A DNA stretch of 20,933 nucleotides, from sequence record NC_006556.1; one strand, written 5' to 3'. The stretch's first letter is position 1; the number at the start of each line of letters is the position of its first letter. Shown piece by piece: positions 4,189 to 20,157 of this stretch. The notes beneath the pieces were generated by a model. It was not told the origin of the DNA and ran no database searches. It saw nothing but the letters and a program-made list of their open reading frames with translations. Position numbers and translations under genes: made by a program.

Positions 4189-4441
4189 GTCTATAGCCGA
4201 TTTGGCCAGGACGATACTGACGGCCGCGGTAGAGGGTCCTAGGGCGGCCCTACCCAAAGCCCTCATGCCGTGTATCCATAAGTTCAAATTGTTCTTGGTG
4301 GAACTTGGCAAAGCCACGGGGGACCCCATGGCCATGGCCTATTCCAATTTCGTGGTTGAGTGTAGAGGCAATTTATGCTTCATGCCTGCCGCAGTTCTAG
4401 AGGCGGCTGAATATGTTGCGGTACACTATGCCAAGTCGTGA
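4172..4441 (+). CDS. Hypothetical protein (89 aa, four Cys)
   Basis: Operon position; GTGA overlap with the next gene. Confidence 0.7.
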   Translation: MECPNKSIADLARTILTAAVEGPRAALPKALMPCIHKFKLFLVELGKATGDPMAMAYSNFVVECRGNLCFMPAAVLEAAEYVAVHYAKS

Positions 4442-5429: not shown

Positions 5430-5620
5430 TGGAGCCTATAGACGAAACGGTGTTTTTTGTAGACGGCCTACCGATTCATGCCGTATTGGTGGGGAAAAAG
5501 AGGCTGTATCTAATGACGCTTTTAGACGGTATATACACATGGGAATATGAGGTGGTTGTACATGGGCGGAGTATAAAGTTCAACTTCCTTAAATTTAGTT
5601 TTATTGACCCCTATAAGTAA
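5429..5620 (+). CDS. Small beta-rich hypothetical protein (63 aa)
   Basis: TAATG coupling; last gene of the plus-strand operon before repeat copy A. Confidence 0.7.
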   Translation: MEPIDETVFFVDGLPIHAVLVGKKRLYLMTLLDGIYTWEYEVVVHGRSIKFNFLKFSFIDPYK

Positions 5621-5634
5621 GTCTACATTACGGA

Positions 5635-5695
5635 TTCTACAAACATATTTTCTCCTCTTTACATTACCCAGAGGCTGCATTTAGATAAAAGTAAA
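5635..5695 (+). repeat. Dispersed intergenic repeat, copy A
   Basis: 58/61 identical to 12092-12152. Confidence 0.95.
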
Positions 5696-5709
5696 TAAAA
5701 AATAGGGGT
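5691..5709 (-). terminator. C-tract/T-tract terminator of the 6321-5710 gene
   Basis: The minus strand reads TAA-A-CCCC-TA-TTTTTT-ATTT right after the stop. Confidence 0.6.
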
Positions 5710-6321
5710 TTACGATATTTGGATTGTGTAGGTTCCGGTCTTATTGGTGTAGAGTGCCAAGCCCCAAGATATGCCGGCTATGCTTTTCGCAGATATCAAC
5801 ACGTTAGGCGCCACGTTGACGTATAGCGCGGTGTAGTTCCCATAGGTGATTTTGCCCAGCGGCAACGACATTTTCAGCGGCTTTACGTAGACCGTAAGGG
5901 ACGTCGTGTTGACTAGGTAGTTGGTCATGTTGATAGTGGTCGGCATGTTGGTCGTTAGGTAGGTCACAGCGAATAGAGGTATCACGGTGTTGTTCACAGC
6001 ATATCCAGCATAATAGAATGGCGTATTCACCGATTCATAGGGGATATAGGCCACGACGCCAAAATACGTGCCGGTGTCACTTACGGTCACAGTTATGGAG
6101 TTGCCGCTAAAGTTTCCGTCCACTACGACCACGGCCGCAGTTGTGTTGACGGGGTCCGGCCATAATATGGTGTAAGGTGTGGTGGTGGTTCCAGGACCTA
6201 CAATTACGGGCGCCCCGCTAGGCTTTCCGTAGTAGGTATACAACACGTAGATAGCGGCCAACACCAGTAACGCAACCACTAACACAACAACGCCCTTATG
6301 CTGGCTATGTGTGTAAGCCAT
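5710..6321 (-). CDS. Membrane-anchored beta-rich glycoprotein (putative envelope or adhesion protein)
   Basis: N-terminal TM helix, Pro/Thr linker, 7 N-x-S/T sequons; C-terminal GTYTIQIS parallels GRYAIQFS (15291 gene) and GTYTLSG (16363 gene). Confidence 0.75.
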   Translation of the reverse strand: MAYTHSQHKGVVVLVVALLVLAAIYVLYTYYGKPSGAPVIVGPGTTTTPYTILWPDPVNTTAAVVVVDGNFSGNSITVTVSDTGTYFGVVAYIPYESVNTPFYYAGYAVNNTVIPLFAVTYLTTNMPTTINMTNYLVNTTSLTVYVKPLKMSLPLGKITYGNYTALYVNVAPNVLISAKSIAGISWGLALYTNKTGTYTIQIS

Positions 6322-6340
6322 GAGTTGAAACTACAGTTTA

Positions 6341-6347
6341 TTTATAA
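6341..6347. promoter_or_regulatory. Single palindromic TATA serving two divergent genes
   Basis: TTATAA (6342-6347) sits almost exactly midway between the starts at 6321 (-) and 6365 (+). Confidence 0.55.
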
Positions 6348-6364
6348 TATTTGCTTTTCTTACT

Positions 6365-7222
6365 ATGGACTTGAGGACTATATACACGGCGTCTGTATTG
6401 GCCGCGGCTATAGTTACGGCTTTGGTCGGTTTCGTCGTGACTGAGAGTTTGTTGGCCCCCATATTGATATTCCTGACGGTGTTGGCGATATTTGACTACT
6501 GGGGCTATGAGGCCGCCAAGGTGGTGGCGCCCATGACTATGTTCCTATACACTCTGGCGTTCTTTGGCGCGCTATCGGGCGTCCAGCTTATCATAATAGC
6601 CGCGGTCATAATAAGCGCCTTGGCGCTTAAAGAAAAGCCGAAATTGGCCGGTCCTTGGCACGCCACTCTGGCGTATCCCCTCAGATTGGCCGCGTTGGCC
6701 CCCCTAGTGTTGTTGTTGGGGCCCCTCTATTTGATATACGACGCGGTTAGGCGTGGCGGGATAATATATAAGGCCGCGGCCGTGTTGGGGGCAATCGGCA
6801 TGGGCCTATTCATGTTTGGGAGGCCCTTAAGCCTATGGGTAGACCCCCATGTGATGTCATTTGGCTGGCTGGCCCAGATTCTCCCCCCAGAGGCCAATCC
6901 GATATACTGGGTAGGCGCGATTGGGTGGGAGGAATTGATATCTAGGGCGATTGGCCCTCTGGGAAACGCGTGGTGGGCCATAATGCACCTCCCCTCTAGG
7001 CTGGCCGCATTACCCGTATTGCCGGCTATAGGTATTGTCCTATTGATAAATATAGGCGGGCGTTGGCTGTGGGAGACCTATAAGGAGGGCGGCCTAATAG
7101 GGTCAATTATAGGCCATGCCGTATACAACGCCATGGTGTCGGCTTTCGCTTTGGGGATACAGTGGTGGCCTACGCTAATAATAATATCTATAATACTATA
7201 TGCCACTTTCAGAAAACCATAA
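6365..7222 (+). CDS. CPBP-family (Abi / type II CAAX) intramembrane glutamic protease
   Basis: Multi-pass protein with E189-E190-x3-R194, W204-x3-H208 and H251-x3-N255 (YKEGGLIGSIIGHAVYN). Confidence 0.85.
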   Translation: MDLRTIYTASVLAAAIVTALVGFVVTESLLAPILIFLTVLAIFDYWGYEAAKVVAPMTMFLYTLAFFGALSGVQLIIIAAVIISALALKEKPKLAGPWHATLAYPLRLAALAPLVLLLGPLYLIYDAVRRGGIIYKAAAVLGAIGMGLFMFGRPLSLWVDPHVMSFGWLAQILPPEANPIYWVGAIGWEELISRAIGPLGNAWWAIMHLPSRLAALPVLPAIGIVLLINIGGRWLWETYKEGGLIGSIIGHAVYNAMVSAFALGIQWWPTLIIISIILYATFRKP

Positions 7223-7245
7223 AAACATGGAGGTAGTAGAGGGCT

Positions 7246-7647
7246 ATGGCGTATAGGGTCGTCTTGGCGGCCTTGGGGGTGTTGTTAGTGGCCGCGCTAT
7301 ATCCGGTGATAGAGGGTGCCGTCAACATGCAGACGGTCACCGGCGTATATGTAGGCAACTTTACGGTATTCGGCGGCCAAGTCTATCCGGTTACGGGCTG
7401 GGGTAGGGTGTACAACGTGGCCGGTCAGACGGTAATACAGTACAACGGCATGGCGTTGGTGGCCAACGGGACGGTGATATTCGGCCATTTGGCCCAACCG
7501 CGTCAGTATACCGGCTATGTAAAGGGTCCTGCGGTGATAGCTGGCGGGATACAGATTATCACCGGTCAGCACATCAAGACGGGCGGTTATGTCTACCTCT
7601 ATCCGGGCGCAGAGGCCTACGTAGTGGACGCTTTAGTCTGGCCGTAA
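7246..7647 (+). CDS. Exported or anchored beta-rich protein
   Basis: Hydrophobic N-terminus followed by G/V/Y/T-rich strands; SD-like GGAGGT at 7229-7234. Confidence 0.75.
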   Translation: MAYRVVLAALGVLLVAALYPVIEGAVNMQTVTGVYVGNFTVFGGQVYPVTGWGRVYNVAGQTVIQYNGMALVANGTVIFGHLAQPRQYTGYVKGPAVIAGGIQIITGQHIKTGGYVYLYPGAEAYVVDALVWP

Positions 7648-7660
7648 CCCCCAATTTTTT
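7648..7660 (+). terminator. C-tract/T-tract terminator
   Basis: TAA-CCCCC-AA-TTTTTT. Confidence 0.6.
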
Positions 7661-7729
7661 ACTAACATCAAAATTTTCGGCGCCCATATTGTTCCGATAC
7701 TTATATATCCGTCTGAGCGATTCCCCCCT

Positions 7730-8116
7730 ATGAGGTGGTTATTGATTTTGGCGTTGGCGGCGGTATTGCTGGCGGTGTGGGCATATAACGTGTCCCACCC
7801 GCCACAGCCGAAAGTAGTGGTCGTAGGCCCAAGCACCAATACGGCCACACAGACGTCCCCCCCTCAACAACAACAACCGCAGTCCCAGCCGGTTATGGCG
7901 TGTCAAGGCACGCTAATCCAGTCGGGCCCCATTAGGGCGTGTAACGTGGTGTCGTATTACGGCAACATGATTGTACTACAATCGCCGGGCTGGATAACCG
8001 GCCAATTCGCCATTTCGGCCATATCTGGCCAGTGTGTGTTCAAGACGGTTGACGGCGTGCTTAGTATAGCTGGGGCTGGGTGTCAGGTTACAATTTTATA
8101 TAACGGGACTAGTTAG
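7730..8116 (+). CDS. Membrane-anchored protein with a P/Q/T-rich linker and a four-Cys beta domain
   Basis: Signal-anchor; VVVVGPSTNTAT resembles PVIVGPGTTTT of the 5710 gene; promoter TTATATATCCG at 7701-7711. Confidence 0.75.
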   Translation: MRWLLILALAAVLLAVWAYNVSHPPQPKVVVVGPSTNTATQTSPPQQQQPQSQPVMACQGTLIQSGPIRACNVVSYYGNMIVLQSPGWITGQFAISAISGQCVFKTVDGVLSIAGAGCQVTILYNGTS

Positions 8117-8358
8117 TGAATATGGTCTGGGAACTAATGAAGGGGTCCAGTAAGCCGACATATTGCGTAATTACGCCCTCCCCTACTGGGGATTTCAACG
8201 TGGCATGCGGCGACCAAATTAAGGCTAATGAATTGCTGAATATGGATAAGGCGTGTCTAGTGGAAATCCACCCAGACGGGCGTACTTTTGTTCAGTGTGA
8301 TAAAGGTCCGGCTGTATTATCGCGTATTGTGGACCTATCCAAATGGCTGAAGCGCTAA
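8116..8358 (+). CDS. Small protein with an internal 30-aa Cys-hairpin repeat
   Basis: TAGTG coupling; C-x5-P-x-G-x3-V-x-C occurs twice (residues 17-31 and 47-61). Confidence 0.7.
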   Translation: MNMVWELMKGSSKPTYCVITPSPTGDFNVACGDQIKANELLNMDKACLVEIHPDGRTFVQCDKGPAVLSRIVDLSKWLKR

Positions 8359-8825
8359 AGAAGTTACTCATAATTTTTTACCTAATAATCTTGGGTTTTT
8401 CTTGGTTACAACTACCTTGGTTTTTCGGCATTACGTCCGTTGGGGGTTTGGTGTTGACCCCCTCAAGCTATCCCTATATCCCTCCCCTTTCGCTAATCGT
8501 GACCGTCCCCACGAATACATGTGAGGGGTGGTCTGTCTATTTTGTCAACGGTACGTGGCTGGGCCTCTTTGAGATACATGTACCGGTAGTCCACTATTTC
8601 AGCGGGAGATATGAGATATTCAACATGAGGGCCTCTTTTGGTTCCAGCGTCCTAGACAATATAAAGCACTATATAGAGGCGTTGATATGGCCGGAAATGG
8701 CGGCTGTCCCGTATAACCACTCATGCGCGGCTAGGGTCATTTTCATTATACCCAGTCCTATAGTGTTAATCTCCTTTGCGGCGTTGGGTTACCACATATA
8801 CTACCGCTTTAGGCGCGTTTGGTAA
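8343..8825 (+). CDS. Divergent S26 signal peptidase (SipW/Sec11 type, Ser-His dyad)
   Basis: N-terminal TM; VLTPSSYP~VxSGSMxP (S41); PLSLIV~GDLIV; EGWSVYF~xGDIIVF; PVVHY~PIVHR (H84); AARVIFIIP~IGKVxxxIP; C-terminal TM. The GDN box is missing. Confidence 0.55.
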   Translation: MAEALKKLLIIFYLIILGFSWLQLPWFFGITSVGGLVLTPSSYPYIPPLSLIVTVPTNTCEGWSVYFVNGTWLGLFEIHVPVVHYFSGRYEIFNMRASFGSSVLDNIKHYIEALIWPEMAAVPYNHSCAARVIFIIPSPIVLISFAALGYHIYYRFRRVW

Positions 8826-8827
8826 CC

Positions 8828-8868
8828 TTTATATACGTGTGATATCTGACGTATATGGTGGTGATAAC
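8828..8868 (+). promoter_or_regulatory. Promoter with GTGATATC box
   Basis: TTTATATA at 8828-8835, GTGATATC at 8839-8846, GTGATAAC at 8861-8868; same layout as 18628-18646. Confidence 0.6.
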
Positions 8869-9631
8869 TAGGGGGTCGGCGAGTTACGTGAAAATAGGCC
8901 CCTACTTCATTAAGGTCTATGTGAAACGCGGGAAGCTGGATTCCCCATTACCGGTGGTGGGGATTTCTGGGTGTACGGAATATGGGTTCTACGCCACTAT
9001 AGACATGGACGGAAGGAGGCTGGCTAGGCGTTTTAGGCGCCATGAGCTTATCAACTACTACCGCATGTACGTGAGGGTCTCTGAGGAAGGTAAGGTTTGG
9101 ATTAATGAGCACGCCATAATCGGGCCGTTTAAAACAAAAAGCCAGGCGGTAAAGATAATGCGGGAGGCGAAAGACGACCCCAAACACCTTAGGACGTTTG
9201 TCCACTACGGCTGTCCTCATGCCGTGATACGGCTCACGCGTTTACCTAATGAGGTAGATATCATTAGGATAATAAATACAGAACTCCCTATGGGTAGGTT
9301 TATTGCGAAATACTTAAATATACAGCCGTTCAATATCCTCATGGCGGAACAATTTAGGCCCATGTATCCGGGCGTTCAGGTGGGTAGTTATCCCGATACA
9401 GTTCAAGGCTCACCTGCGGCTGAGAGGGCTGAGGAAGTCTATAAGGTGAAATACGCGGTTGGCATATGCCAAGCCCTCAAGGAGTACGACCCCCAGGCCT
9501 TCCAGGAGTACTTTGGCGGGGACATGCAGAAGTGTGTTAGGGCGGCCGGTTCCTTTGCCGACCTTAACTTTGACACGTGGAAGATTAAGTGGGGTAGGAA
9601 CCTAGGCGCCCAGATATCGGCTTTCGCATAA
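8855..9631 (+). CDS. Soluble 258-aa protein with a basic N-half; candidate nucleocapsid or structural protein
   Basis: Own promoter and terminator; RRLARRFRRH patch; heads the block of putative virion genes. The structural role is inference only. Confidence 0.6.
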   Translation: MVVITRGSASYVKIGPYFIKVYVKRGKLDSPLPVVGISGCTEYGFYATIDMDGRRLARRFRRHELINYYRMYVRVSEEGKVWINEHAIIGPFKTKSQAVKIMREAKDDPKHLRTFVHYGCPHAVIRLTRLPNEVDIIRIINTELPMGRFIAKYLNIQPFNILMAEQFRPMYPGVQVGSYPDTVQGSPAAERAEEVYKVKYAVGICQALKEYDPQAFQEYFGGDMQKCVRAAGSFADLNFDTWKIKWGRNLGAQISAFA

Positions 9632-9648
9632 CCCCTTCCTATTTTTCC
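9632..9648 (+). terminator. C-tract/T-tract terminator
   Basis: TAA-CCCC-TTCCTA-TTTTT-CC. Confidence 0.6.
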
Positions 9649-9683
9649 GATACCTTAAAATAATCGTACGCTTTTAATATCAC

Positions 9684-10004
9684 ATGGCGTACTCCCTAGT
9701 CAGGTCAATATATAAGGGCCTTAATGGCGGTGATGGTTACTATACGGTTGCGGCTAAGGCCTTTAAGTCGTTTATACTCTTAGAGGACGGAAAACTCAGC
9801 GATTGCGCCCTACAATTTTTCGCGGCTTTGCTGGAATACTACCGCCTACGCAGATTGGAAAACTACTATCGCTTGACTTTAGAGGTGTTGGAATCGTATC
9901 GGCCCTATGACAGAGACGGGCGGCTTGATGCGCTAATTCGGCGCCATAGGGAGTACTATGAAGAGCTAGTAAAGCTTAAAGCCCAAGAGGCTCAAGCTAA
10001 GTGA
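9684..10004 (+). CDS. Helical hypothetical protein (106 aa)
   Basis: TATA TTAAAATA at 9655-9662; AATATCAC directly before the ATG. Confidence 0.75.
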   Translation: MAYSLVRSIYKGLNGGDGYYTVAAKAFKSFILLEDGKLSDCALQFFAALLEYYRLRRLENYYRLTLEVLESYRPYDRDGRLDALIRRHREYYEELVKLKAQEAQAK

Positions 10005-10225
10005 TGGACGTAACTGCGATTGTCCAGATACTGAGCCTCACGTGGAATCTAATCTATCAATTCCTATCCGTAGTCTTTACCCTTATACAGAACCCAATTT
10101 CCGCCATTATAGGCGGCATTATCTTGGCGTTTATACCTAGGTATATACTCTGGGCCGTGGGTCTGGCTTTGGTGGTCTACGGCGTTCTGGCGCTCATAGC
10201 CCCCATGATTCATTTGCCTATCTAA
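10004..10225 (+). CDS. Small hydrophobic protein (73 aa), candidate envelope protein
   Basis: TGATG coupling; amphipathic helix plus two TM-like segments. Confidence 0.7.
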   Translation: MDVTAIVQILSLTWNLIYQFLSVVFTLIQNPISAIIGGIILAFIPRYILWAVGLALVVYGVLALIAPMIHLPI

Positions 10226-10428
10226 TGTCCAAGGCTGAGGAAATAAGGAAGCTTATCACGGAAAAGCGGTTTAGTGAGGCCATGCGCCAAGTAAAGGATA
10301 TCCTTTCGTCTAGGGGCGTCTATGTACACAGAATTTCGGTGGTCTATGTCAGCGGGAACAAAATAGTCGTGATCACAGCTGACGGCATAAAGATAGTGGT
10401 GACCGAGACAGAGGTCATAATCGCGTAA
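10225..10428 (+). CDS. Small hypothetical protein (67 aa)
   Basis: TAATG coupling; helix-helix followed by beta strands. Confidence 0.7.
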   Translation: MSKAEEIRKLITEKRFSEAMRQVKDILSSRGVYVHRISVVYVSGNKIVVITADGIKIVVTETEVIIA

Positions 10429-10457
10429 ATTAATAATAAGACCTTTCAATTAAGACT

Positions 10458-11183
10458 ATGATAATACCGTTTAGCCTAGGGGCGTTGGCCGGATTGTTGA
10501 TAATAGCGTTCTTTGCCAGGCGCCAAATCATATTCGCCTTGGTGGCAATATTTATATCGGGCGCTTTGGCTGGGGTTGCCGGCTCAATCTACTATTCGTT
10601 TATGGCTATGTATTTGGCGGCGTTGACTATATACATTATCGTCCAAGAGGAAGGCCGTATTGTTGAGCGGGCGTTGGCGTTGTATCTAGGCACTTTGGCC
10701 ATTTGGCTGTCGGATAATAGCGCGGCGGCCTCAGCACTATCCCTAATAGCGTATCAATTAGTGATGCCGCTATTCCAGGCCATAAACAACGTCTTTGTCC
10801 AGGCGGGCATAGCGTTCTCTGGCCTACTGGCTTGGTCTATAGTGGCTAGGCGGATTATGACTGTGGCTGAGGAATTTCCGCTAATAGGGGCCGGCTATGT
10901 GTATCTGGCTTATTCCATATTGGCGCCTATGGTCATGACGTTGCCCGACTATCTGAAACTGGCCTTGGGGCTGGCCCTAATTGGGCCGTTCAGCCAAGCC
11001 GTCAAGGGTGACCTAGAGGCGCTTGAGGAAATAGCGCCCTTCCTCTGGCTATTGCCGATACCGATAGATACGGTCAAGGTGATAGGCGCGGCTGTGGCCA
11101 TAATAGAGTTGGCGCTAGGCGTGCTGTCCAAGAAGCGGCTATTGGCGTCCGCCATGTGGGCTGAGGCGATATTGCTGGCATGA
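10458..11183 (+). CDS. Multi-pass membrane protein (241 aa)
   Basis: Ala/Leu/Ile-rich hydrophobic segments throughout; ATGA overlap with the next gene. Confidence 0.8.
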   Translation: MIIPFSLGALAGLLIIAFFARRQIIFALVAIFISGALAGVAGSIYYSFMAMYLAALTIYIIVQEEGRIVERALALYLGTLAIWLSDNSAAASALSLIAYQLVMPLFQAINNVFVQAGIAFSGLLAWSIVARRIMTVAEEFPLIGAGYVYLAYSILAPMVMTLPDYLKLALGLALIGPFSQAVKGDLEALEEIAPFLWLLPIPIDTVKVIGAAVAIIELALGVLSKKRLLASAMWAEAILLA

Positions 11184-12052
11184 GCTATATACCGGACTTA
11201 TCGCGTTTTGGCGTCCTAGGCATATTGGCGCTTTTTGTTCCGTCATTTGTATACGGCGCTATGACTATGTACCTAGGCGTGGCTAACGGCTGGCTATTCC
11301 TAATCCAGTTGCTGGCCCTAATCGCGATTATTGCCCACTACAAAAATTTCAGTGAGGCCGTACTATTCGCCTTGGGGGCGGCTTTCGGCGGCTTGACCAC
11401 CCAATTTATAGGCATAAAGTGGCTAGTNGTAGACGCCCTATCGCCGGCACTATACGTTCTACTGTCTATGGTCAACACTATAGAAAAGGCGTTTTACTTG
11501 GGTATCGCCTTGGGCATGGTGGGCTTTCTACTGGCCCCCATAGTCTTTATCGTGACGACATTAGTATCGCTGGCCGCCATGCTTATACTAAGGCTCAGCG
11601 GCCTACTTTATGAGGCCGTGAATCTAGTGGTCCACGGCCTTAGGCATGTCCCAGAGGGGTATAGGGCGTTGTTGGCCCCTTGGATAGGGTCCGTCATGAT
11701 TGCCCTACCGATAGCTGTGTTGGGCGGCATGTTCCTTTCGGCGTTGGCTTTAGTTGTTGGGGCGGTAGTTGGGGGCGCTTTGGTGGGCATGTTGGGCACG
11801 GCCTCTGAGGTGTCTGCGTTGGCCGGATTCATAATACCGACGTTGCTGACAAGACCCCAAACCAAGACAATCGCAGAGGTGTTGATGGACATGGGCGCCC
11901 TATTCTTGGGGGTGATGTTGGTGGGCTATGGGGTAGTCCAGGTGTTGTGGACGGCGGGATATGCGGCCATATCTACACGCCACGCCAGTAGGGGGTTCTA
12001 CCTTATCGGACTTTCTGCAATAACTGCGGTGTTGATAGGTGCCGCTCACTAA
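11180..12052 (+). CDS. Multi-pass membrane protein (290 aa)
   Basis: About 9 hydrophobic Gly/Ala/Leu-rich segments. Confidence 0.8.
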   Translation: MSYIPDLSRFGVLGILALFVPSFVYGAMTMYLGVANGWLFLIQLLALIAIIAHYKNFSEAVLFALGAAFGGLTTQFIGIKWLXVDALSPALYVLLSMVNTIEKAFYLGIALGMVGFLLAPIVFIVTTLVSLAAMLILRLSGLLYEAVNLVVHGLRHVPEGYRALLAPWIGSVMIALPIAVLGGMFLSALALVVGAVVGGALVGMLGTASEVSALAGFIIPTLLTRPQTKTIAEVLMDMGALFLGVMLVGYGVVQVLWTAGYAAISTRHASRGFYLIGLSAITAVLIGAAH

Positions 12053-12066
12053 ACCCCCCTTTTTCT
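12053..12066 (+). terminator. C-tract/T-tract terminator
   Basis: TAA-A-CCCCCC-TTTTT-CTT. Confidence 0.6.
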
Positions 12067-12152
12067 TGAGCCACGTTACTACGGCGTATTTTTCTACAAA
12101 CATATTTTCTCCCCTTTACAATACCCAGAGGCTGCATTTAGATAAAGGTAAA
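12067..12152 (+). repeat. Dispersed intergenic repeat, copy B (longest)
   Basis: 12067-12136 is 65/70 identical to 18533-18602; 12092-12152 is 58/61 identical to 5635-5695. Confidence 0.95.
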
Positions 12153-12154
12153 GA

Positions 12155-12171
12155 GATATCACAGTGATAAC
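12155..12171. promoter_or_regulatory. Imperfect inverted repeat (operator-like) over a start codon
   Basis: GATATCAC-A-GTGATAAC (7/8 symmetric) covers GTG 12164. Confidence 0.5.
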
Positions 12172-12796
12172 ATTTATAAACACGGGGATTCTCTTACCTA
12201 TGGACTCACTAGAAATGGACGCGGAATACGAATGGGACCTAGACGAAATAAACTCCCTAGAGTTCTGGCTGGACGCGATTTCATTTGTGTTGCCGCATAT
12301 AGAGGACCTACCGTTGGAACAACAAATAGAGTACGTGAGGACTTGGGGCCAGACGGTTGCCAAGGCGCGTGCCATGAGAGTGGGGGAGGGGGGGTACAAT
12401 AAGGAGGCTGTGGACTTCATGGCCGATATGGTGGTTGCCGGCAAATTCGGCGTGGTGGGGCCAAACATCACTAGGGAGTTGTACGAATACGTGAGGACTT
12501 TCGGGGTGGACCAATTCCTATTTGAGGCGCGTGATGTGTTAAAGGCGGCGTACCCCCAGATTAGGAGGGCGTCTCAGTACTACCTATCAATACCGGCGGA
12601 CGCCTATATCGATATAGTGTCTTATGCCGCCCAAGGCAAATACGACGACATAAGGAGGTACGCGGAAATGTTGATAGAGGAAGGGCGGTCACCTAGGTCG
12701 GTGTATTTCAACCTCTACTACATAGCCCGGGCCACAGGCGATAGGGAGATATACGGGATAGCTAGGGAGATAGAGAGGCTTTCGCGGAAACGTTAA
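12164..12796 (+). CDS. Helical protein with a very acidic N-terminus (210 aa)
   Basis: MDSLEMDAEYEWDLDEINSLEFWLD; TATA-like TTTAGATA at 12137-12144 lies inside repeat B. Confidence 0.8.
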   Translation: MITFINTGILLPMDSLEMDAEYEWDLDEINSLEFWLDAISFVLPHIEDLPLEQQIEYVRTWGQTVAKARAMRVGEGGYNKEAVDFMADMVVAGKFGVVGPNITRELYEYVRTFGVDQFLFEARDVLKAAYPQIRRASQYYLSIPADAYIDIVSYAAQGKYDDIRRYAEMLIEEGRSPRSVYFNLYYIARATGDREIYGIAREIERLSRKR

Positions 12797-12823
12797 TATA
12801 TAAACCAATTCAATCATTTTTTC

Positions 12824-13351
12824 ATGGCTAGATATCCGGTACCTATGGTTCTGGCGGCCGCGATAGTCATAGGTGTAGTGTACGTAGTGGTCAACGCCAA
12901 CATCACTACGCCTTCCGTTTCGCCTTTCCTAAAGCAATATAACACAACTGCGGTTGGCGGCACTTTTAAGGGCGTGGTCTACGCCAACACTACGGGCAAA
13001 ATCTACTACGGCATGTTGCCCATTTATGGGGTCGTATACAGCACAACTACTACCGCGCTCAACTACACCATGGGCGGGAAGACTTTCACGGTTTGTTACG
13101 CTAACGGCTATGCCACGCCTTTGGTCAACATGACTGCCGGCACATGCACCAGTACGGTGGCCCTCTTGGCCGGCATGAAGGTTGTGAATGGGACGGTTAC
13201 CCTAATGCTCAACAACGGCACCACTATAGCTGTGCCTCTCAACTACATAGCCAACGGGCCGGTGGACATAGCCGTTGGCCAGTACGACACTACCGGCCAA
13301 AAGGCGTACGTAATTTACATGCCCTCTGGCGGGTCCGTCGTAGTTAAATAA
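12824..13351 (+). CDS. Exported beta-rich glycoprotein, RxPIPL-signal family
   Basis: MARYPVPMVLAAAIVIG|VVYVVV; 7 sequons; two Cys pairs; TATA at 12793-12804. Confidence 0.8.
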   Translation: MARYPVPMVLAAAIVIGVVYVVVNANITTPSVSPFLKQYNTTAVGGTFKGVVYANTTGKIYYGMLPIYGVVYSTTTTALNYTMGGKTFTVCYANGYATPLVNMTAGTCTSTVALLAGMKVVNGTVTLMLNNGTTIAVPLNYIANGPVDIAVGQYDTTGQKAYVIYMPSGGSVVVK

Positions 13352-13373
13352 AAAACCCCAAATATTTTTCCTC

Positions 13374-14186
13374 ATGGAGTGGAAGAGATTTCCGATTCCG
13401 CTAATTCTGGCGGCTGTATTAGTAGGCGCAGTGTTGATAATAATCACGATAAACGTGACCGTACCCAAGGCGTTCTATGCCTCAAGCGGCAACGCCACGA
13501 TAACCCTATATGCTGGGTCGCCCTATATGTACTACGACACTTGGCCGGGCACGGTAACCGTGAATGTCGTAAGCGGTACGGCGGCATTTACTACTACTAT
13601 ATACTACGGCATTATGTTGCCGTCGTACAACGCCTATACGCCACTCATAGCTATCCTAACAAATGCGCCTAAGGCGTTCTACACGACCTCTACGTGGTCT
13701 ATATCCACGCCAGTGGGTTCCCGCGCCATAAAGTTGTGGCTTGAGCAGGATTCGAGTGGCGGGTGGTGGTTGGTCGTGGAAGACACAAACCAAGCGGTTT
13801 ATCCCGTGTGTGCCGTGTATAAAATGAACATGACCTCACTGTCCTTAAGCGGTGCCACGTATTATTTGTTCTACCCAATACCCACTACCGCCACGTCCAC
13901 TACCGCGCCAATTCCGTCAGAATGTGGCGGTGACTACACTTTGGTCCAATCGTGGAGTTTCAGCGGTGGAAATATAGTGGGTACAAACGTCTATAGCGGG
14001 ACCACCCGTGTGGCCAGTAGGGGTCTGACCGCAACTACTGCGTCTTCTGTATCCTACACGACCCAATATCTACAATATCCGGGCATAAATAGGACGGACC
14101 TCACTGTGTTTTACATAGAAACGGGATATGCCGTGGCGTTCAATCAGGTTAACAACCCAATTACCGTCACGATAACCCACAGCTAA
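13374..14186 (+). CDS. Exported beta-rich glycoprotein, RxPIPL-signal family
   Basis: MEWKRFPIPLILAAVLVGA|VLIIITINV; T/Y/S-rich; ends in a beta strand. Confidence 0.8.
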   Translation: MEWKRFPIPLILAAVLVGAVLIIITINVTVPKAFYASSGNATITLYAGSPYMYYDTWPGTVTVNVVSGTAAFTTTIYYGIMLPSYNAYTPLIAILTNAPKAFYTTSTWSISTPVGSRAIKLWLEQDSSGGWWLVVEDTNQAVYPVCAVYKMNMTSLSLSGATYYLFYPIPTTATSTTAPIPSECGGDYTLVQSWSFSGGNIVGTNVYSGTTRVASRGLTATTASSVSYTTQYLQYPGINRTDLTVFYIETGYAVAFNQVNNPITVTITHS

Positions 14187-14200
14187 TCCCCCTTTTTCCT
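14187..14200 (+). terminator. C-tract/T-tract terminator
   Basis: TAA-T-CCCCC-TTTTT-CCT. Confidence 0.6.
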
Positions 14201-14235
14201 CTAAGCTCAGTTGTTTTTAAGGGATATAGTAGGGC

Positions 14236-14538
14236 ATGAACACCAAACCCAAACTCGTGGAAAAAGAATTCGCAATAATCTACGACGGTAAGTACCTAAT
14301 ATTCGCGGGAATCAAGCCGGAACTTGGGATAAACATGTTGGCCCTATTCGGGCCGGACACTAGGTGTGATATCTGTGGGAGGAAGATAGGGTACGGCCCC
14401 TATATGGTCGTGGCTGAGAAATACGGCGAAAAAGGCCATGTGGTTTGTGGGAAGTGCATGAACTCTCCCGACTTTAAGCCGGTAGTGGAAAAAATGAGAC
14501 GTAGGGCTTTAGGTAGTCGGCGTCAAAACAATATTTGA
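14236..14538 (+). CDS. Zinc-finger protein (CxxC...CxxC)
   Basis: CDIC and CGKC with a basic C-terminal helix; 30-nt convergent overlap with the next gene. Confidence 0.75.
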   Translation: MNTKPKLVEKEFAIIYDGKYLIFAGIKPELGINMLALFGPDTRCDICGRKIGYGPYMVVAEKYGEKGHVVCGKCMNSPDFKPVVEKMRRRALGSRRQNNI

Positions 14539-15261
14539 GGCGGCGTTTGTCATAAAGAAATAGCCCATTATTATTTTGAAACTACCGAAATCGTAGAGGT
14601 TGTATCCACCTATCGTGGACCCAGGCGATATGCTGAGAGTGCCGGTGTAGATACGGGTGGGCCAGCCGGTTGACCAACTTCCAAGTGAGCATGAATACCA
14701 ATTGCCCACGACTACAATCCAGTTTGCTGAGCCGATTAGGCTATTTTCTATACTGCATATCGTAGACTCTTTGCCGCTCACGTCACTCTGTGAGGCCAGC
14801 GTGAATAGGTACTCACTTCCCGCAGTGGCGGCAACCTTCCACACAAACGCGGCTGAGTAGGCTGAGCCGGTGGCTGAGTTGTAGACTTGGAATACCGTGA
14901 GCACTAGGCCGCTATTGTTGTAGACGTAGAACTTGGCCGTGCCAAGCTGATATCCCGTCCCGCTAGGTATCTGGCCTATAGAGGCCGCCAGGGCGTGATA
15001 TTTTGTATAGCCGGAATATGAGGAACTATCGCCTATGTGGTCTATATAGGTTATACTGGTGACGTTGGCGCTCACTACTGTCAACTTCCCGCCTATGACG
15101 AAATCGGTAGTTACCGCGGGCGCAACTACCGTATAGGTGGTTCCGTTAAATGTGACGTATTTGGGGTTGTACGAATATACATATTTGATACTGACCACGA
15201 TAACTATCGTAACTGCGGCTGTGAATACGGCGGCCAGTATTAGGGGGATTGGAATCCGCAT
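14509..15261 (-). CDS. Exported beta-rich protein, RxPIPL-signal family (reverse orientation)
   Basis: MRIPIPLILAAVFTAA|VTIVIVVS; minus-strand stop followed by CCCT...TTTTTT. Confidence 0.8.
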   Translation of the reverse strand: MRIPIPLILAAVFTAAVTIVIVVSIKYVYSYNPKYVTFNGTTYTVVAPAVTTDFVIGGKLTVVSANVTSITYIDHIGDSSSYSGYTKYHALAASIGQIPSGTGYQLGTAKFYVYNNSGLVLTVFQVYNSATGSAYSAAFVWKVAATAGSEYLFTLASQSDVSGKESTICSIENSLIGSANWIVVVGNWYSCSLGSWSTGWPTRIYTGTLSISPGSTIGGYNLYDFGSFKIIMGYFFMTNAASNIVLTPTT

Positions 15262-15290
15262 AAATATATTTTAGGCTATTATATTTTGCC
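15262..15290. promoter_or_regulatory. 29-bp divergent promoter region
   Basis: AT-rich gap between the starts at 15261 (-) and 15291 (+), with a TATA-like element near each end. Confidence 0.45.
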
Positions 15291-16010
15291 ATGACTCCTA
15301 GAAATAAACGGTTGTTGGCCGCGGCGTTGGCCATAATAGCGATACTGGCCATAGCGGCCTTTCTACTAATGGGCGCCTCAAAGGGCGGTGGGATACCCAC
15401 ACAGCAACCCACCACCACTACTACCTCTCCTCCCCCAGCATATACCGACGTGTATCCTACCGTGTCCCCCCCTAATAGTGTGAGCGGTATCTATATTGAT
15501 AGTGGGAGGTTTACGTGTGATGGCACTACATGTACTCTGACCGTTTCGGGCTATGGGACCTTTGTATCAATCGTGGCCTATAGCGCTAGGCCTCTGTCTT
15601 CCGCTAACGCCACGGTTGGTCCGGCCTACATAACCGTTGGGAACTACCGCATATGGCTATTCGGCTATATAGCCACCTCTCTGGCCAACTATTCGGATAC
15701 GGCGTTTAGCGTGTACGTCTTTCCGGCTTTGAAATGCGGCTATATCTACTACCCCAAAGTGGGCGCCAGCATAGCGTTGGCCGTATTTAATGACACCAAC
15801 TACTGGGTCGTAGTCCCCACGAATAGTCCCGGCACATGCGCCCTTCCGGGCCACATAATAACCGTTGACAATACAAACGCGGTGGCGTTTGTAGACGGGA
15901 CCTCTACTACGATATCGATAGGCACGCTTCCCAAATCGGTCAGCGGCGTGGCCTATGCCTATATGGTGTCTATATCGCAAAGCGGGAGGTACGCGATTCA
16001 GTTCTCATAA
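15291..16010 (+). CDS. Membrane-anchored beta-rich glycoprotein, paralog of the 5710 and 16363 genes
   Basis: Signal-anchor, PTQQPTTTTTSPPP linker, CDGTTCTLTVSG motif, C-terminal GRYAIQFS. Confidence 0.8.
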   Translation: MTPRNKRLLAAALAIIAILAIAAFLLMGASKGGGIPTQQPTTTTTSPPPAYTDVYPTVSPPNSVSGIYIDSGRFTCDGTTCTLTVSGYGTFVSIVAYSARPLSSANATVGPAYITVGNYRIWLFGYIATSLANYSDTAFSVYVFPALKCGYIYYPKVGASIALAVFNDTNYWVVVPTNSPGTCALPGHIITVDNTNAVAFVDGTSTTISIGTLPKSVSGVAYAYMVSISQSGRYAIQFS

Positions 16011-16040
16011 TTAATATAAATACCTAACATGTTTTTCTAC

Positions 16041-16346
16041 ATGCTCAGACATTTGGATTTGGCGTTAGACATGATTGCTGTATTTGGGTTGGCGCTTATC
16101 CTACTGTCGTACATAATGCCGGTGTCCCATATGAATGACATAATCGCGGGCACAATAGCCGTAGTGGCGATAGATTTGGTGGTGTCTTTGGGCATGCCTA
16201 GTGACGCAGTTGAGGACGCGTTTGCCCTTATAGCCATGTTGGCCGCGGTGTTTGGTTTCTATCCGCCCCTAATGTATATGATTGCGTTGTTGATAAAGGC
16301 GTACGATATTCATGAGGACGCCAAAGGCCTAAAATATATAATCTAA
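16041..16346 (+). CDS. Small multi-pass membrane protein
   Basis: Three to four hydrophobic segments; start moved from 16029 to 16041 by TATA spacing (16011-16020). Confidence 0.7.
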   Translation: MLRHLDLALDMIAVFGLALILLSYIMPVSHMNDIIAGTIAVVAIDLVVSLGMPSDAVEDAFALIAMLAAVFGFYPPLMYMIALLIKAYDIHEDAKGLKYII

Positions 16347-16362
16347 CCTCACGTTTTTTCCC

Positions 16363-17073
16363 ATGTTTAGGTGGTTCCCGGCGTTAATACTGGCTTTTGT
16401 ATTCACCGTAGGCATCACGATAATCATAGTGGCCAATTTGACGGCCACAACTGGCGCGGCCCCCTCAACGCCAACTGGGATTTCGGTGTACCCAACGTCC
16501 AGCGTCACGAATCCCGCCAGCGCGGTCTGGATAACCGATAAGGCGTCGTGTAGTGGGACTACGTGTACCCTATCGATATCCGGCCCAACGGGCGGGGTCA
16601 TGACGATAGTCTACGACACGACCAAACCGACCACCAACGCAACCCTATCTGCGGCATGTGTGCCCGTGCCGGGACTCAACACCACTATATACCTATTCGG
16701 AATCGCGTCTACGGGCCTATACAACCAAACCCTCACGGCCTCAAGCGGAAGCATAACCGTGGAACTACACAGCACCTACGGCTATCTTTACTACAACGTA
16801 AGCAACACCATAGTTGGCGTGCCTCTATCGGTGACTTTGGCCTCTACGACATATGTGGCGGTCCCAACCGCCCCAGCGTCTTTGCCTAGTGGAAGCGCCA
16901 AGTACTGGGTCTTGGTGAATAATGACAACGGCATGTACTACATATATTCGGGCGGGATTTTGGCGGCCTACGGCTATGTGGCCAATTGTACTATACCCAC
17001 AATACCCAGCGGCGTCATGATGGGCTTCCGCGTATACATGCCGGGAGTAGGCACATATACCCTATCTGGATAA
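16363..17073 (+). CDS. Exported beta-rich glycoprotein: RxPIPL-type signal fused to the GTTCTL domain
   Basis: MFRWFPALILAFVFTVG|ITIIIV; CSGTTCTLSISG; C-terminal GTYTLSG. Confidence 0.8.
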   Translation: MFRWFPALILAFVFTVGITIIIVANLTATTGAAPSTPTGISVYPTSSVTNPASAVWITDKASCSGTTCTLSISGPTGGVMTIVYDTTKPTTNATLSAACVPVPGLNTTIYLFGIASTGLYNQTLTASSGSITVELHSTYGYLYYNVSNTIVGVPLSVTLASTTYVAVPTAPASLPSGSAKYWVLVNNDNGMYYIYSGGILAAYGYVANCTIPTIPSGVMMGFRVYMPGVGTYTLSG

Positions 17074-17074
17074 T

Positions 17075-17893
17075 ATGGCCATGAGGTGGCCAATCCCGCT
17101 TATAGTGGCCTTGGCTTTGGTGTCAGCTGTGACGTTGACTATAACCTACACCTATCAATTCTACGCGCCAGATATCGTGGGAAGCGCGGTTCCCTATACG
17201 GCCTCTGGCGCGTCTAACGGCTATTTGGCTGGGGGCATGGGATACATATTCATATATGTCAACGGGACGTATCCCAATCCGTACCTCATGACGTGGAATC
17301 CCGGCCCCAATCCGGCCATATCTACGTCGGGCCCCAGCTATCCATTTCCGGCCGTGATATACATGCCGAATCCGGTCAACGCCACAATCCAAGTCCCCAA
17401 CTCTAGGTGTTCTTCCGGTTACGACTACATATTGACCTACTACTATCCGGCTTACGGCATAGTCGTAGTGAAATACGCGCTATGTGGCCAATTCGATTAC
17501 GCGTTTGTCGGCTATCCTATCCAAGGCCACCCGGGTTACTACACCACTCTGACCGGCGTTGATCCATGTAACCAAGCGTGGTCGTATATTGTTGCCGCGC
17601 CAGACCCATTTGGGTACTATCCGGACGTATTACACAGCTATAGCGTGTCGTCTTCCGGCATAACGTTCACTTTCGATTTGGTTCAGCAACTCACTACCGG
17701 CGTCCAGTGTTATAGGGGCGATAAGACCCTCACGTATTCGTTCAGCGCGCCCAGCATATACGGCCTAAAGACTTGGCCGTTTGTATACAGCTATGGCGGG
17801 ATTCAATTCGCCCTATATCAACCCATATGGTTCTACGTGGGCGCAACGGGGTCCTATTCGGTTAATGCCACCTATATACCCTCTTGGTCCTAA
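17075..17893 (+). CDS. Exported beta-rich Tyr/Pro-rich protein, RxPIPL-signal family
   Basis: MAMRWPIPLIVALALVSA|VTLTITYTYQFY; four Cys. Confidence 0.8.
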   Translation: MAMRWPIPLIVALALVSAVTLTITYTYQFYAPDIVGSAVPYTASGASNGYLAGGMGYIFIYVNGTYPNPYLMTWNPGPNPAISTSGPSYPFPAVIYMPNPVNATIQVPNSRCSSGYDYILTYYYPAYGIVVVKYALCGQFDYAFVGYPIQGHPGYYTTLTGVDPCNQAWSYIVAAPDPFGYYPDVLHSYSVSSSGITFTFDLVQQLTTGVQCYRGDKTLTYSFSAPSIYGLKTWPFVYSYGGIQFALYQPIWFYVGATGSYSVNATYIPSWS

Positions 17894-17904
17894 CCCCTTT
17901 TTTC
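17894..17904 (+). terminator. C-tract/T-tract terminator
   Basis: TAA-CCCC-TTTTTT-C. Confidence 0.6.
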
Positions 17905-17939
17905 GCAAAGCAATAAAATATCTGTGCGATACCTACCTC

Positions 17940-18254
17940 ATGGAGGTGAAAATGGAGAGGGCCATGAGGGAAATAGCTTTGGCTATAGTCAAGACCATAG
18001 AGGGGGCCAGAGGGCGGACGGTGTGTTTCCGTATTAGGGGGTTAAAGAGGTACGCAGAAATAAGTGGCGTGGGGATATTGCTGGTGCACGAGTTCTTTAA
18101 GGCGATTGAGCCGCATGCGGTTTTCACAAAGGCCGGGTCGGGTAAGCGGAAGATCATAGTCTGCGTGCCCAGAGAGGTCGTTGAGGGCTATCTTGAGACA
18201 TATCGCAAATCCGGCGTAGAGGGGCTAATACAGGTGCTGTGGCCTAGGAAATGA
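17940..18254 (+). CDS. Basic protein, possibly winged-helix DNA-binding
   Basis: Start is ATG 17940 (leaderless) or 17952 (SD GGAGGTG at 17942-17948). The ORF-track start at 17781 overlaps the upstream gene and its terminator. Confidence 0.7.
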   Translation: MEVKMERAMREIALAIVKTIEGARGRTVCFRIRGLKRYAEISGVGILLVHEFFKAIEPHAVFTKAGSGKRKIIVCVPREVVEGYLETYRKSGVEGLIQVLWPRK

Positions 18255-18535
18255 GCGCCATATCGTGGTCACGCCACGGTAAGTACTGGACGCTCACTTG
18301 GTGTTGTGATAAGACGGTGGTTACTGCGGTTGGTGACGACTCGATAGAGACACTCTACATATTGAGGGACGGCGATTATCTGCATTTGATATATATCAAT
18401 AATAATAAGGAGATACGCGATTTATACGTCTTGGCCAAGCCGGCCTATATCAACACCATAGTGGACAAATACACGACGTTGCGGTCACTACTTGAGGCCG
18501 TAAAGGACGAATTCCCGGTTGTGGCTATAGGCTGA
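18251..18535 (+). CDS. Hypothetical protein (94 aa)
   Basis: ATGA coupling; its stop codon TGA forms the first bases of repeat copy C. Confidence 0.75.
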   Translation: MSAISWSRHGKYWTLTWCCDKTVVTAVGDDSIETLYILRDGDYLHLIYINNNKEIRDLYVLAKPAYINTIVDKYTTLRSLLEAVKDEFPVVAIG

Positions 18536-18602
18536 GCCACGTTACTACGGCGTATTTTTCTACAAACCTATTTTCTCCCCTTTACATTATCCAGGGGCAG
18601 CA
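18533..18602 (+). repeat. Dispersed intergenic repeat, copy C
   Basis: 65/70 identical to 12067-12136, with the first 35 nt exact. Confidence 0.95.
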
Positions 18603-18627
18603 CCTTGGCTAATGTCAACCGGTATCA

Positions 18628-18646
18628 TTTATATATCCGTGATATC
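18628..18646 (+). promoter_or_regulatory. Promoter with GTGATATC box
   Basis: TTTATATA-TCC-GTGATATC, with ATG 18657 29 nt after the TATA start. Confidence 0.6.
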
Positions 18647-18656
18647 ATGGGTATAC

Positions 18657-18974
18657 ATGGTGGTGGTCGGGTCCCCAATCAAAATAAACCAACTCCCGGC
18701 GGAAAAAGTACGTGAGCTAGTCAGAAAGGCGATATGTACGGCCATGCGAAACACCAAATCGCGCTTCATAACGTTCACCTANAACGCCATAGAAAAGGAA
18801 CTACNAAAAATGGGGTTCACCTCTGGGACGGGCGTAGTGAGGTCAATACTGACCGGCCTAATGGCTGAATTCGGCTTTACCCTAGTGGAAAAACATAAGC
18901 GGAACTACGGCTATGTGTATCGCTGGGGCGTGACGAAAGAAAGGCTGGAAGAATTGTGTAGAGACATATGGTGA
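18657..18974 (+). CDS. Putative winged-helix DNA-binding protein
   Basis: Helix, strand FITFT, NAIEKEL..GF, VVRSIL..LM helix, then a wing (FTLVEK..YVYRW). Codon TAN at 18780-18782 is ambiguous (Tyr or stop). Confidence 0.6.
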   Translation: MVVVGSPIKINQLPAEKVRELVRKAICTAMRNTKSRFITFTXNAIEKELXKMGFTSGTGVVRSILTGLMAEFGFTLVEKHKRNYGYVYRWGVTKERLEELCRDIW

Positions 18975-20008: not shown

Positions 20009-20023
20009 TCCTCCTTTTTTTCC
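20009..20023 (+). terminator. Pyrimidine-tract terminator
   Basis: TCCTCC-TTTTTTT-CC after stop 20002. Confidence 0.6.
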
Positions 20024-20157
20024 GTTACATATTTTCGCCGCGTCTGTATATAGCTGTGATACCTAGGCGGGAAATTTTTGGGCCAGTCCCGCCAGCATTT
20101 GGCGGCCACTAGGCGTGTTTTTTCGGCGTAAGGTGTTTTTATACCTCTAATAAGGTC

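Follow-up and report, generated by a model that had tools for sequence, protein, structure and literature searches.

A conserved bipartite DNA site in the intergenic repeats of Thermoproteus tenax spherical virus 1 and other globuloviruses

The window analysed here is the complete linear genome, 20,933 bp in length, of Thermoproteus tenax spherical virus 1 (TTSV1; NC_006556/AY722806; Globuloviridae), an enveloped virus whose host is a hyperthermophilic crenarchaeon. Its record lists 38 protein genes, nearly all of them 'hypothetical', and annotates no repeat or regulatory features. We find that three intergenic repeats in this genome (copies A, B and C) share a central site, CTTTAC-N11-GCWGC (W, A or T), often followed by N12-GTAAAG, which is conserved in globuloviruses that are otherwise unalignable as DNA and holds the last GCWGC words of the genome. 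We suggest that the repeat is a transcription-unit boundary cassette around a sequence-constrained protein-binding site in double-stranded DNA, with a terminator/insulator or a regulatory role, a reading to which we give a probability of about 45%.

The site was compared across PSV (L004), TSPV1 (L005), PSV2 and 36 further metagenomic globulovirus loci (about 412 kb), the latter collected through alignment of the VP2 coat protein. These viruses are distant from one another. The VP2 proteins of the metagenomic loci are 41-48% identical to that of TTSV1, the proteins of the core-bearing relatives (PSV, TSPV1 and metagenomic loci) are just 28-48% identical, and a 2020 comparison of PSV, PSV2 and TTSV1 reported no appreciable nucleotide similarity among the genomes. 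Most of the fetched genomes have dispersed intergenic repeats of their own, and the centre of the TTSV1 repeat can be aligned with the PSV-type repeats. The core motif is found in PSV and TSPV1 and has exact matches in 31 of 43 loci; the chance expectation, estimated from its information content, is about 0.03 matches in about 0.55 Mb. Within TTSV1 itself the 15-nt core pattern has three exact matches, against 0.05 expected from shuffled sequences with one mismatch allowed.

Over three lineages the invariant part is CTTTAC(AA)-N9-GCWGC. The whole imperfect palindrome, CTTTAC-N11-GCWGC-N12-GTAAAG, is present in TTSV1 copies A and B and in the PSV copies at 4362 and 26681; the core measures ~40 bp, and one arm is often decayed. 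Among PSV-like viruses a pair of core copies agrees at about 85% of positions, regardless of whether the pair shares a genome, a position or neither, whereas coding flanks reach 84% identity at matching positions and fall to 38% elsewhere. Since the identity of the core is independent of genome and position while the flanks vary, selection on its sequence maintains the core. That each copy is kept to one sequence indicates a sequence-specific function, beyond what recent duplication would leave. Both orientations occur in TSPV1-like genomes and in PSV, and a site whose orientation is not fixed is more likely to be read as double-stranded DNA than as RNA.

The second line of evidence comes from the GCWGC word at the centre of the site. 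TTSV1 contains three GCWGC sites (5674, 12131 and 18597), each of them the centre of a repeat, compared with 36.7 +/- 5.4 in dinucleotide-preserving shuffles. PSV has four against 62.8 expected and TSPV1 three against 41.8, and all four and all three lie in the element, so that the depletion amounts to 12-15 fold. In the three genomes a perfect CTTTAC arm lies 8-13 nt from every survivor. The 36 metagenomic loci hold 55 GCWGC sites against roughly 800 expected; 50 of the 55 have the perfect arm at the same distance and the remaining five have near-variants of it. The related word GCSGC (S, C or G), tested in TTSV1, is not depleted. PSV2, in which the element is absent, has seven GCWGC sites against 33.8 expected, and the loci L037 and L042 (20.6 kb each) have none: their element copies read GCAAC, GTAGC, GCATC, GTAGC and GAAGC, independent single-base losses in sites that are otherwise intact.

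On the simplest view, selection acts against GCWGC genome-wide, through host restriction or through the cost of 5-methylcytosine (m5C) at 85-95 C. Predicted GCWGC-specific m5C methyltransferases are tabulated for Pyrobaculum aerophilum, Pyrobaculum sp. 1860 (two), Pyrobaculum sp. WP30, Thermoproteus neutrophilus (a former Thermoproteus species), Aeropyrum pernix (M.ApeKI) and others (REBASE-derived review table, PMC11033074). GCWGC is the recognition sequence of both M.ApeKI and its partner endonuclease, and M.ApeKI modifies the second C at 90 C (PMC8557920). In coding DNA the word would be removable by synonymous change, and it would survive only where the sequence is functionally constrained; its survival in the element alone is thus independent evidence of strong selection on the element. 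Deamination of m5C was considered as the cause of the losses in L037 and L042 and rejected, because M.ApeKI methylates the second C (PMC8557920) and the changes in GCAAC, GTAGC, GCATC and GAAGC are at other positions. An asymmetric, BbvI-like reading of the word as GCAGC was likewise set aside, as W varies between the copies (GCTGC in A and B, GCAGC in C).

Word avoidance in TTSV1 is extreme beyond this one word. The 5-mer spectrum is bimodal, with 76 of 1024 5-mers occurring at most four times on both strands (about 41 expected) and nine reverse-complement pairs absent altogether, including GGATG/CATCC, CGATC/GATCG, CATAC/GTATG and TAGCA/TGCTA. Among 4-mers, GATC occurs 10 times against 163 expected, CTCG/CGAG 12 against 161 and CAGG/CCTG 25 against 161. 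The avoidance is common to all four genome segments delimited by the repeats, and points to many restriction systems, or another word-specific selection, as the pressure behind it.

In TTSV1 a repeat search returned a single family, three direct copies at 5610-5704, 12067-12161 and 18533-18627 whose starts are 6457 and 6466 bp apart. All copies are in plus orientation. A and B agree at 58 of 61 positions (5635-5695 and 12092-12152), B and C at 65 of 70 (12067-12136 and 18533-18602). Each follows the stop of a plus-strand gene: gp09 (5620), gp21 (12052) and gp33 (18535, inside copy C). Copy A lies between the convergent genes gp09 (plus strand, end 5620) and gp10 (minus strand, end 5710), copy B between gp21 and gp22, and copy C between gp33 and gp34; by BLASTP the genes flanking the three copies are unrelated. 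The repeats do not behave as a transposable element, a miniature inverted-repeat transposable element or a segmental duplication, their flanks being unrelated and their positions syntenic across genomes. TTSV1 gp01-gp18 and TSPV1 GP1-GP12 are collinear, and one of the TSPV1 copies has the slot that copy A takes in TTSV1.

Copy A (5635-5702) contains a T4 run (5648-5651), CTTTAC (5657-5662), GCTGC (5674-5678) and the right arm GTAAAT (5691-5696); it ends in A6 (5697-5702), which on the minus strand is a T6 terminator for gp10. The longest copy, B (12067-12161), has T5 (12089-12093), T4 (12105-12108), CTTTAC (12114-12119), GCTGC (12131-12135), a TATA-like TTTAGATA (12137-12144) and the right arm GTAAAG (12148-12153). 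Copy C (18533-18627) begins at the gp33 stop codon TGA (18533-18535) and continues with T5 (18555-18559), T4 (18571-18574), CTTTAC (18580-18585) and GCAGC (18597-18601), its right arm having decayed. A and B have a common 3' extension, ATTTAGATAAA(A/G)GTAAA. B and C share a private 5' extension, TGAGCCACGTTACTACGGCGTATTT (12067-12091 in B), which is identical at 25 of 25 positions and in C opens with the gp33 stop codon. The 25 nt are outside the family-wide element and can therefore stem only from recent copying: copies B and C show recent gene conversion. The three copies of locus L024 are similarly 93-96% alike.

The original prediction for this DNA had described three near-identical, non-coding, same-orientation repeats behind plus-strand gene stops, and the repeat search and alignment confirm it; its view that they are no simple triplication agrees with the unrelated flanking genes. 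Of the recent spread or homogenisation that it proposed, homogenisation is borne out by the private extension of B and C. It had overlooked the family-wide conservation, the bipartite and palindromic build of the site, its place between terminator and promoter, and the retained GCWGC words.

A possible decayed fourth copy lies at 20015-20047 on the plus strand, after the gp37 stop; it reads T7-CCGTTACATATTTTCGCCGCGTC and lacks GCWGC. The gp12/gp13 gap (7648-7729) corresponds to the PSV slot that holds the element copy at 15275 (gp12 being PSV gp22 and gp13 PSV gp23); in TTSV1 it contains only CCCCCAATTTTTTACTAACAT, which may be a decayed remnant of the element.

The third line of evidence is position. 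TTSV1 genes typically end in CCCC-T5-7-C, the form expected of archaeal oligo-T terminators, and 22 of 33 plus-strand T-runs of at least 5 fall in intergenic DNA, which makes up 9% of the genome. The elements of TTSV1 and PSV-like viruses follow such tracts. Copies B and C each have T5 and T4 shortly 3' of the stop, and copy A has T4 only on the plus strand and T6 on the minus strand for gp10. In PSV-like genomes a T5-T6 run begins 10-25 nt after the upstream stop and leads directly into CCT-CTTTACAAAC, with the gene-proximal TATA box at least 100 nt further downstream. The convergent junctions (TTSV1 copy A and PSV 4362) are mirror-symmetric: each strand reads a T-run and then CTTTAC, with GCWGC in the middle. 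In TSPV1-like genomes one copy, in reverse orientation, precedes the VP2 TATA box by ~25 nt. What is common throughout is that the site always lies in a gap that has the terminators of one unit on one side and, on the other, either the following promoter or a convergent terminator. An intergenic CTTTAC 8-13 nt from GCWGC in such a gap describes all three TTSV1 copies, the copies of PSV and TSPV1, and 50 of the 55 metagenomic GCWGC sites.

Taken together, the position after gene stops, the mirror symmetry at convergent junctions, the conservation that extends past the T-run, the mixed orientation and the lack of RNA structure favour a boundary cassette. A sequence-specific factor, viral or host, would recognise as double-stranded DNA a site that comes right after the oligo-T terminators ending one unit and before either the next promoter or a convergent terminator. 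The bound factor could reinforce termination as a roadblock, or control the neighbouring promoter, so that the ends of units would be marked and insulated.

Several observations weigh against this interpretation. TSPV1-like copies have no adjacent T-run, and the one near the VP2 TATA box fits a regulator site better than a terminator. gp21 has its own C-rich T5 terminator, CCCCCCTTTTTCT (12054-12066, plus strand), 5' of copy B, and as a plain terminator the element would be unneeded there. A search of PSV2 found no element, and the losses in L037 and L042 make GCWGC itself dispensable in those lineages. Pfam scans of 30 TTSV1 proteins yielded nothing DNA-binding, the sole match being ORF239-like in gp22. 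By phylogenetic profile gp18 is the only protein family that tracks the motif, occurring in motif-bearing viruses and being absent from PSV2; as the binding factor it was rejected, being a two-helix membrane protein with no PDB match.

The repeats could instead be promoters, like the intergenic repeats of halovirus HF2, for which promoter activity was demonstrated (PMC8707807); we regard this as unlikely, though by no means negligible. In one form GCWGC would stand immediately before the start site and CTTTACAA would be a weak TATA box; in the other, GCWGC and TTTAGATA would serve as transcription factor B recognition element and TATA box. The product would be the downstream unit or, at copy A, an antisense or small RNA. 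Copy C has TTTACATTAT at -31..-22 from an in-frame ATG at 18612 and copy B has TTTAGATA 27 nt before a GTG at 12164; the distances from TTTACATT to the ATG and from TTTAGATA to the GTG match the TATA-to-start spacing of TTSV1, and in L009 and L010 GCAGC adjoins a canonical TATTTAAAT. However, the about 20 clear TATA boxes of TTSV1 are pure A/T 8-mers, while both candidates have a C or G. The gene ahead of copy A and of PSV 4362 is convergent, and there is no plus-strand open reading frame (ORF) to drive; one TSPV1 copy faces away from any gene. The PSV copy near 9498 and L038 6252 are without the GCWGC half, yet the downstream gene retains its own TATA box, and PSV-like copies have a T6 run about 30 nt after the predicted start site.

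The proximal promoters of the two downstream TTSV1 genes are both on the plus strand and outside the repeat core. That of gp22 (12172-12202) has the TATA box TTTATAAA at 12172-12179, 28 nt before the ATG at 12200, and is leaderless; that of gp34 (18628-18659) has TTTATATA at 18628-18635, 29 nt before the ATG at 18657. The GTG at 12164 and the ATG at 18612 are alternative in-frame starts of gp22 and gp34 at a TATA-like distance from an intra-repeat motif, so that two isoforms of each protein are possible.

A role in replication or maintenance appears improbable. In such a role the sites would serve a linear episome, chronically carried without integration, as origins, priming sites or partition sites, possibly gated by host m5C at GCWGC. 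No replication proteins can be recognised in globuloviruses, and these persist with neither lysis nor integration; the family's ICTV profile has no information on replication and names terminal repeats only (PMC12662056). The sites are palindromic, terminators shield the side or sides from which transcription arrives, the flanks are A/T-rich, and the sites hold the last GCWGC words of each genome; M.ApeKI methylates GCWGC at 90 C (PMC8557920). The arms, though, are merely 6 bp long, and the site does not resemble known origin recognition boxes, a comparison that was made without one from Pyrobaculum; a conventional archaeal origin would have such boxes, inverted around a DNA-unwinding element, beside cdc6 or whiP, whereas Pfam found no initiator gene. 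It would be unusual for 20-28 kb to hold three to five origins, PSV2 has no element, and L037 and L042 have no GCWGC. The skew changes at the repeats are explicable by gene content. The four repeat-delimited segments have GC skews of 0.148, 0.099, 0.019 and 0.147 and AT skews of +0.044, -0.097, -0.010 and +0.032, and with their shared word avoidance this fits differing gene content, not recent import or a replication switch.

A related idea, in which GCWGC, as a target of host ApeKI-type restriction and m5C methylation, was purged but one copy was kept deliberately, as a point that the host can methylate or cleave, in each of 3-5 insulated palindromic sites as a switch that senses host methylation or replication state (for origin, partition or transcription control), is likewise a long shot. 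If true, such methylation-sensing sites would let a non-integrating linear genome persist in dividing hyperthermophilic cells.

Use of the repeats as recombination substrates that shuffle, invert or excise modules, in the manner of promoter early stem-loop (PeSL) cassettes or lambdoid boundary sequences, has little probability as their function, even though exchange between copies has evidently taken place (the private extension of B and C; the near-identical L024 copies). Recombination points, like internal replication sites, were among the suggestions of the original prediction. Gene order differs among TTSV1, TSPV1 and PSV, the relocated gp22 homologue adjoins repeats, and a TSPV1-like site lies within a perfect 70-nt inverted repeat flanking the VP2 module. 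Against this, the core is equally conserved in orthologous and paralogous copies, which argues for sequence-specific function and not just for homology that serves recombination. Breakpoints, including those of single-gene inversions, do not fall cleanly at the sites, no recombinase is recognisable, and none of the four TTSV1 segments, sharing as they do one word avoidance, is a recent import.

In the TSPV1-like genomes two copies of the site form the perfect inverted repeat of ~70 nt, the partner lying ~4.4-5.4 kb downstream of the VP2-side copy. In TSPV1 the arms are at 11800-11872 and 16290-16362 and flank the VP2-to-GP25 structural module, and the same arrangement is seen in L011, L023, L026, L027 and L030; each arm opens with a CTTTACAA-N9-GCWGC site. 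This could be an invertible or recombining segment, or a pair of regulatory sites.

It is very unlikely that a small structured RNA or small peptide is encoded by the repeats or includes them. The TSPV1-like conservation does run ~45 nt past GCWGC and ends near a T5 run, and L010 has a canonical TATA box with a T6 run ~45 nt after the predicted start. Nevertheless, the fold z-scores of the three copies on both strands ranged from -1.0 to +1.4 relative to shuffles, and alignment folding gave one 5-bp helix with one compensatory change. Scans of the repeats against Rfam (E <= 1) and for tRNA and tmRNA returned no matches, and no plus-strand start codon was found within the repeat. A minus-strand mini-ORF (ATGCAGCC...) was rejected, since copy C has a stop in it and a different start.

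The near-equal spacing in TTSV1 is nominally rare. Random triples of positions or intergenic gaps have two distances that differ by at most 9 bp with a probability of 0.0011-0.0014, and triples of plus-strand stop codons with one of 0.003; the nominal value of about 0.001 belongs to a pattern noticed post hoc. Relatives do not share it. In PSV, TSPV1 and the metagenomic genomes the copies number 2-5 and are unevenly spaced: PSV has copies at 4362, 15275, 23097 and 26681 (minus strand) and a partial copy near 9498, TSPV1 at 5596 (minus), 11848 (minus) and 16302 (plus), and the spacings are 4593/5793/7784 in L024, 5156/5844/7713 in L038 and 7846/7119 in L042. A separation of 6460 bp between two TSPV1 repeats was judged a coincidence, because the pair lacks synteny with A and B, and L011 and L027 have not kept the spacing. 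The degenerate fourth copy at 20015, if real, would break the even pattern in TTSV1 itself. The equal spacing is probably a coincidence of gene content, and the proposal in the original prediction that phasing is functional fails on the uneven copies of PSV and TSPV1 and their absence from PSV2. Sites phased at a structural period of ~6.46 kb for nucleocapsid coiling or packaging, which only the near-equal spacing would recommend, can be all but dismissed, given a copy number of 0 to 5, variable spacing in every relative and distances to the genome ends of 5634 and 2375 bp.

The boundary site is not the only repeat family in these genomes. TSPV1 has a second, lineage-specific family of seven copies (2588, 5502, 9048, 9081, 11725, 16202 and 16394), present also in L011, L027 and L012, which is built on the palindrome CGTAAATTACG and on TACCACGTTTCG/CGAAACGTGGTA and occupies the same intergenic gaps. 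PSV carries a nine-copy promoter family, TTTAAAAAT, 28 nt before the ATG (6370, 19380, 20388, 21094, 23276, 23927, 24545, 26018 and 26900); it is preceded by a TTTACGG-N3-CCGTAAA palindrome, which resembles an operator for the right-end genes. The half-site GTAAA/TTTAC is common to all globulovirus repeat families.

Wider searches kept returning to TTSV1. Among phage records, copy B with its flanks matched TTSV1 alone by BLASTN, and in IMG/VR a pattern scan and two VP2 protein scans matched only TTSV1 itself. A VP2 scan of the contigs of 185,579 genomes gave no matches; the palindromic form had 119 matches in those genomes, about the chance number, and Thermoproteales were absent among the 80 matches listed. 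The genome-contig scans thus give no evidence of host chromosomal copies of the element.

Some further features of the TTSV1 record may be mentioned. The largest annotated 'gap' (8826-9340, 515 nt) is occupied by an ORF at 8855-9631 (258 aa), which has a good TATA box, TTTATATA, ~28 nt 5' of its ATG; gp16 (annotated 9341-9631) is possibly the C-terminal part of this longer protein, or has an internal start. The direct repeats D2-D4 (1329-2126) reflect a tandem gene duplication, gp02 being 45% identical to the C-terminal part of gp01. The deposited sequence has 10 ambiguous bases (N), for example near 18813.

In the literature searched we found no description of the element or of its tie to the last GCWGC sites; the original descriptions of PSV and TTSV1 were outside that search and may mention the repeats. 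Repeated intergenic regulatory cassettes as such are already known from archaeal viruses (HF2). A family-wide DNA site would offer the first concrete cis-acting handle on the globuloviruses, whose transcription, replication and maintenance are almost unstudied; it could be used as bait for its binding factor and as a landmark for mapping transcription units. As the sole survivor of a 12-15-fold purge of GCWGC, the site also provides a natural test of functional selection against restriction avoidance or m5C instability at 85-95 C, and survivors of purged words could help to locate functional non-coding DNA of other viruses.

Among known systems, the archaeal oligo-T (U-tract) terminators are alike in having T4-T6 in or directly before the repeat, 10-25 nt from the upstream stop, and several tracts in series that are mirrored at convergent junctions. 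They differ in that a plain terminator requires no conserved 40-bp sequence downstream, and TSPV1-like copies have no T-run next to them. Roadblock-assisted terminators and stoperators include the Reb1 and TTF-I sites behind a T-rich element (RNA polymerase I), mTERF, and the stoperators of cluster A mycobacteriophages. There, too, a conserved protein site (putative in the present case) stands a few bases after a T-rich release element, and few to many copies, mostly oriented with transcription, stand at the ends of gene blocks; in TSPV1-like genomes the orientation is not strict, and for the archaeal RNA polymerase such a mechanism would be an analogy.

PeSL cassettes of T4-type phages consist of an early promoter and a stem-loop. 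Like these and the lambdoid boundary sequences, the TTSV1 repeats are intergenic, presumably regulatory cassettes that take part in recombination, as the gene conversion in TTSV1 attests, but by folding they have no stem-loop, and they have no canonical promoter. The P1 pac site, oriC and the IS10 promoter are examples of control regions that have retained clusters of Dam GATC sites. The likeness is the keeping of host-methylatable sites at control elements; TTSV1, with methylation that is putative, has one site per element in a genome otherwise purged.

The repeats of HF2 and other Haloferacalesvirus members (PMC8707807) are similarly multi-copy and intergenic, 29-58 bp long, with sequence and relative position kept in relatives, and like those of TTSV1 they stand at the heads and ends of long transcription units. 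They carry canonical A/T-rich promoter motifs and have demonstrated promoter activity, whereas the TTSV1 core has no pure A/T TATA box, occurs between convergent genes and after oligo-T terminators, and is built on CTTTAC/GCWGC/GTAAAG.

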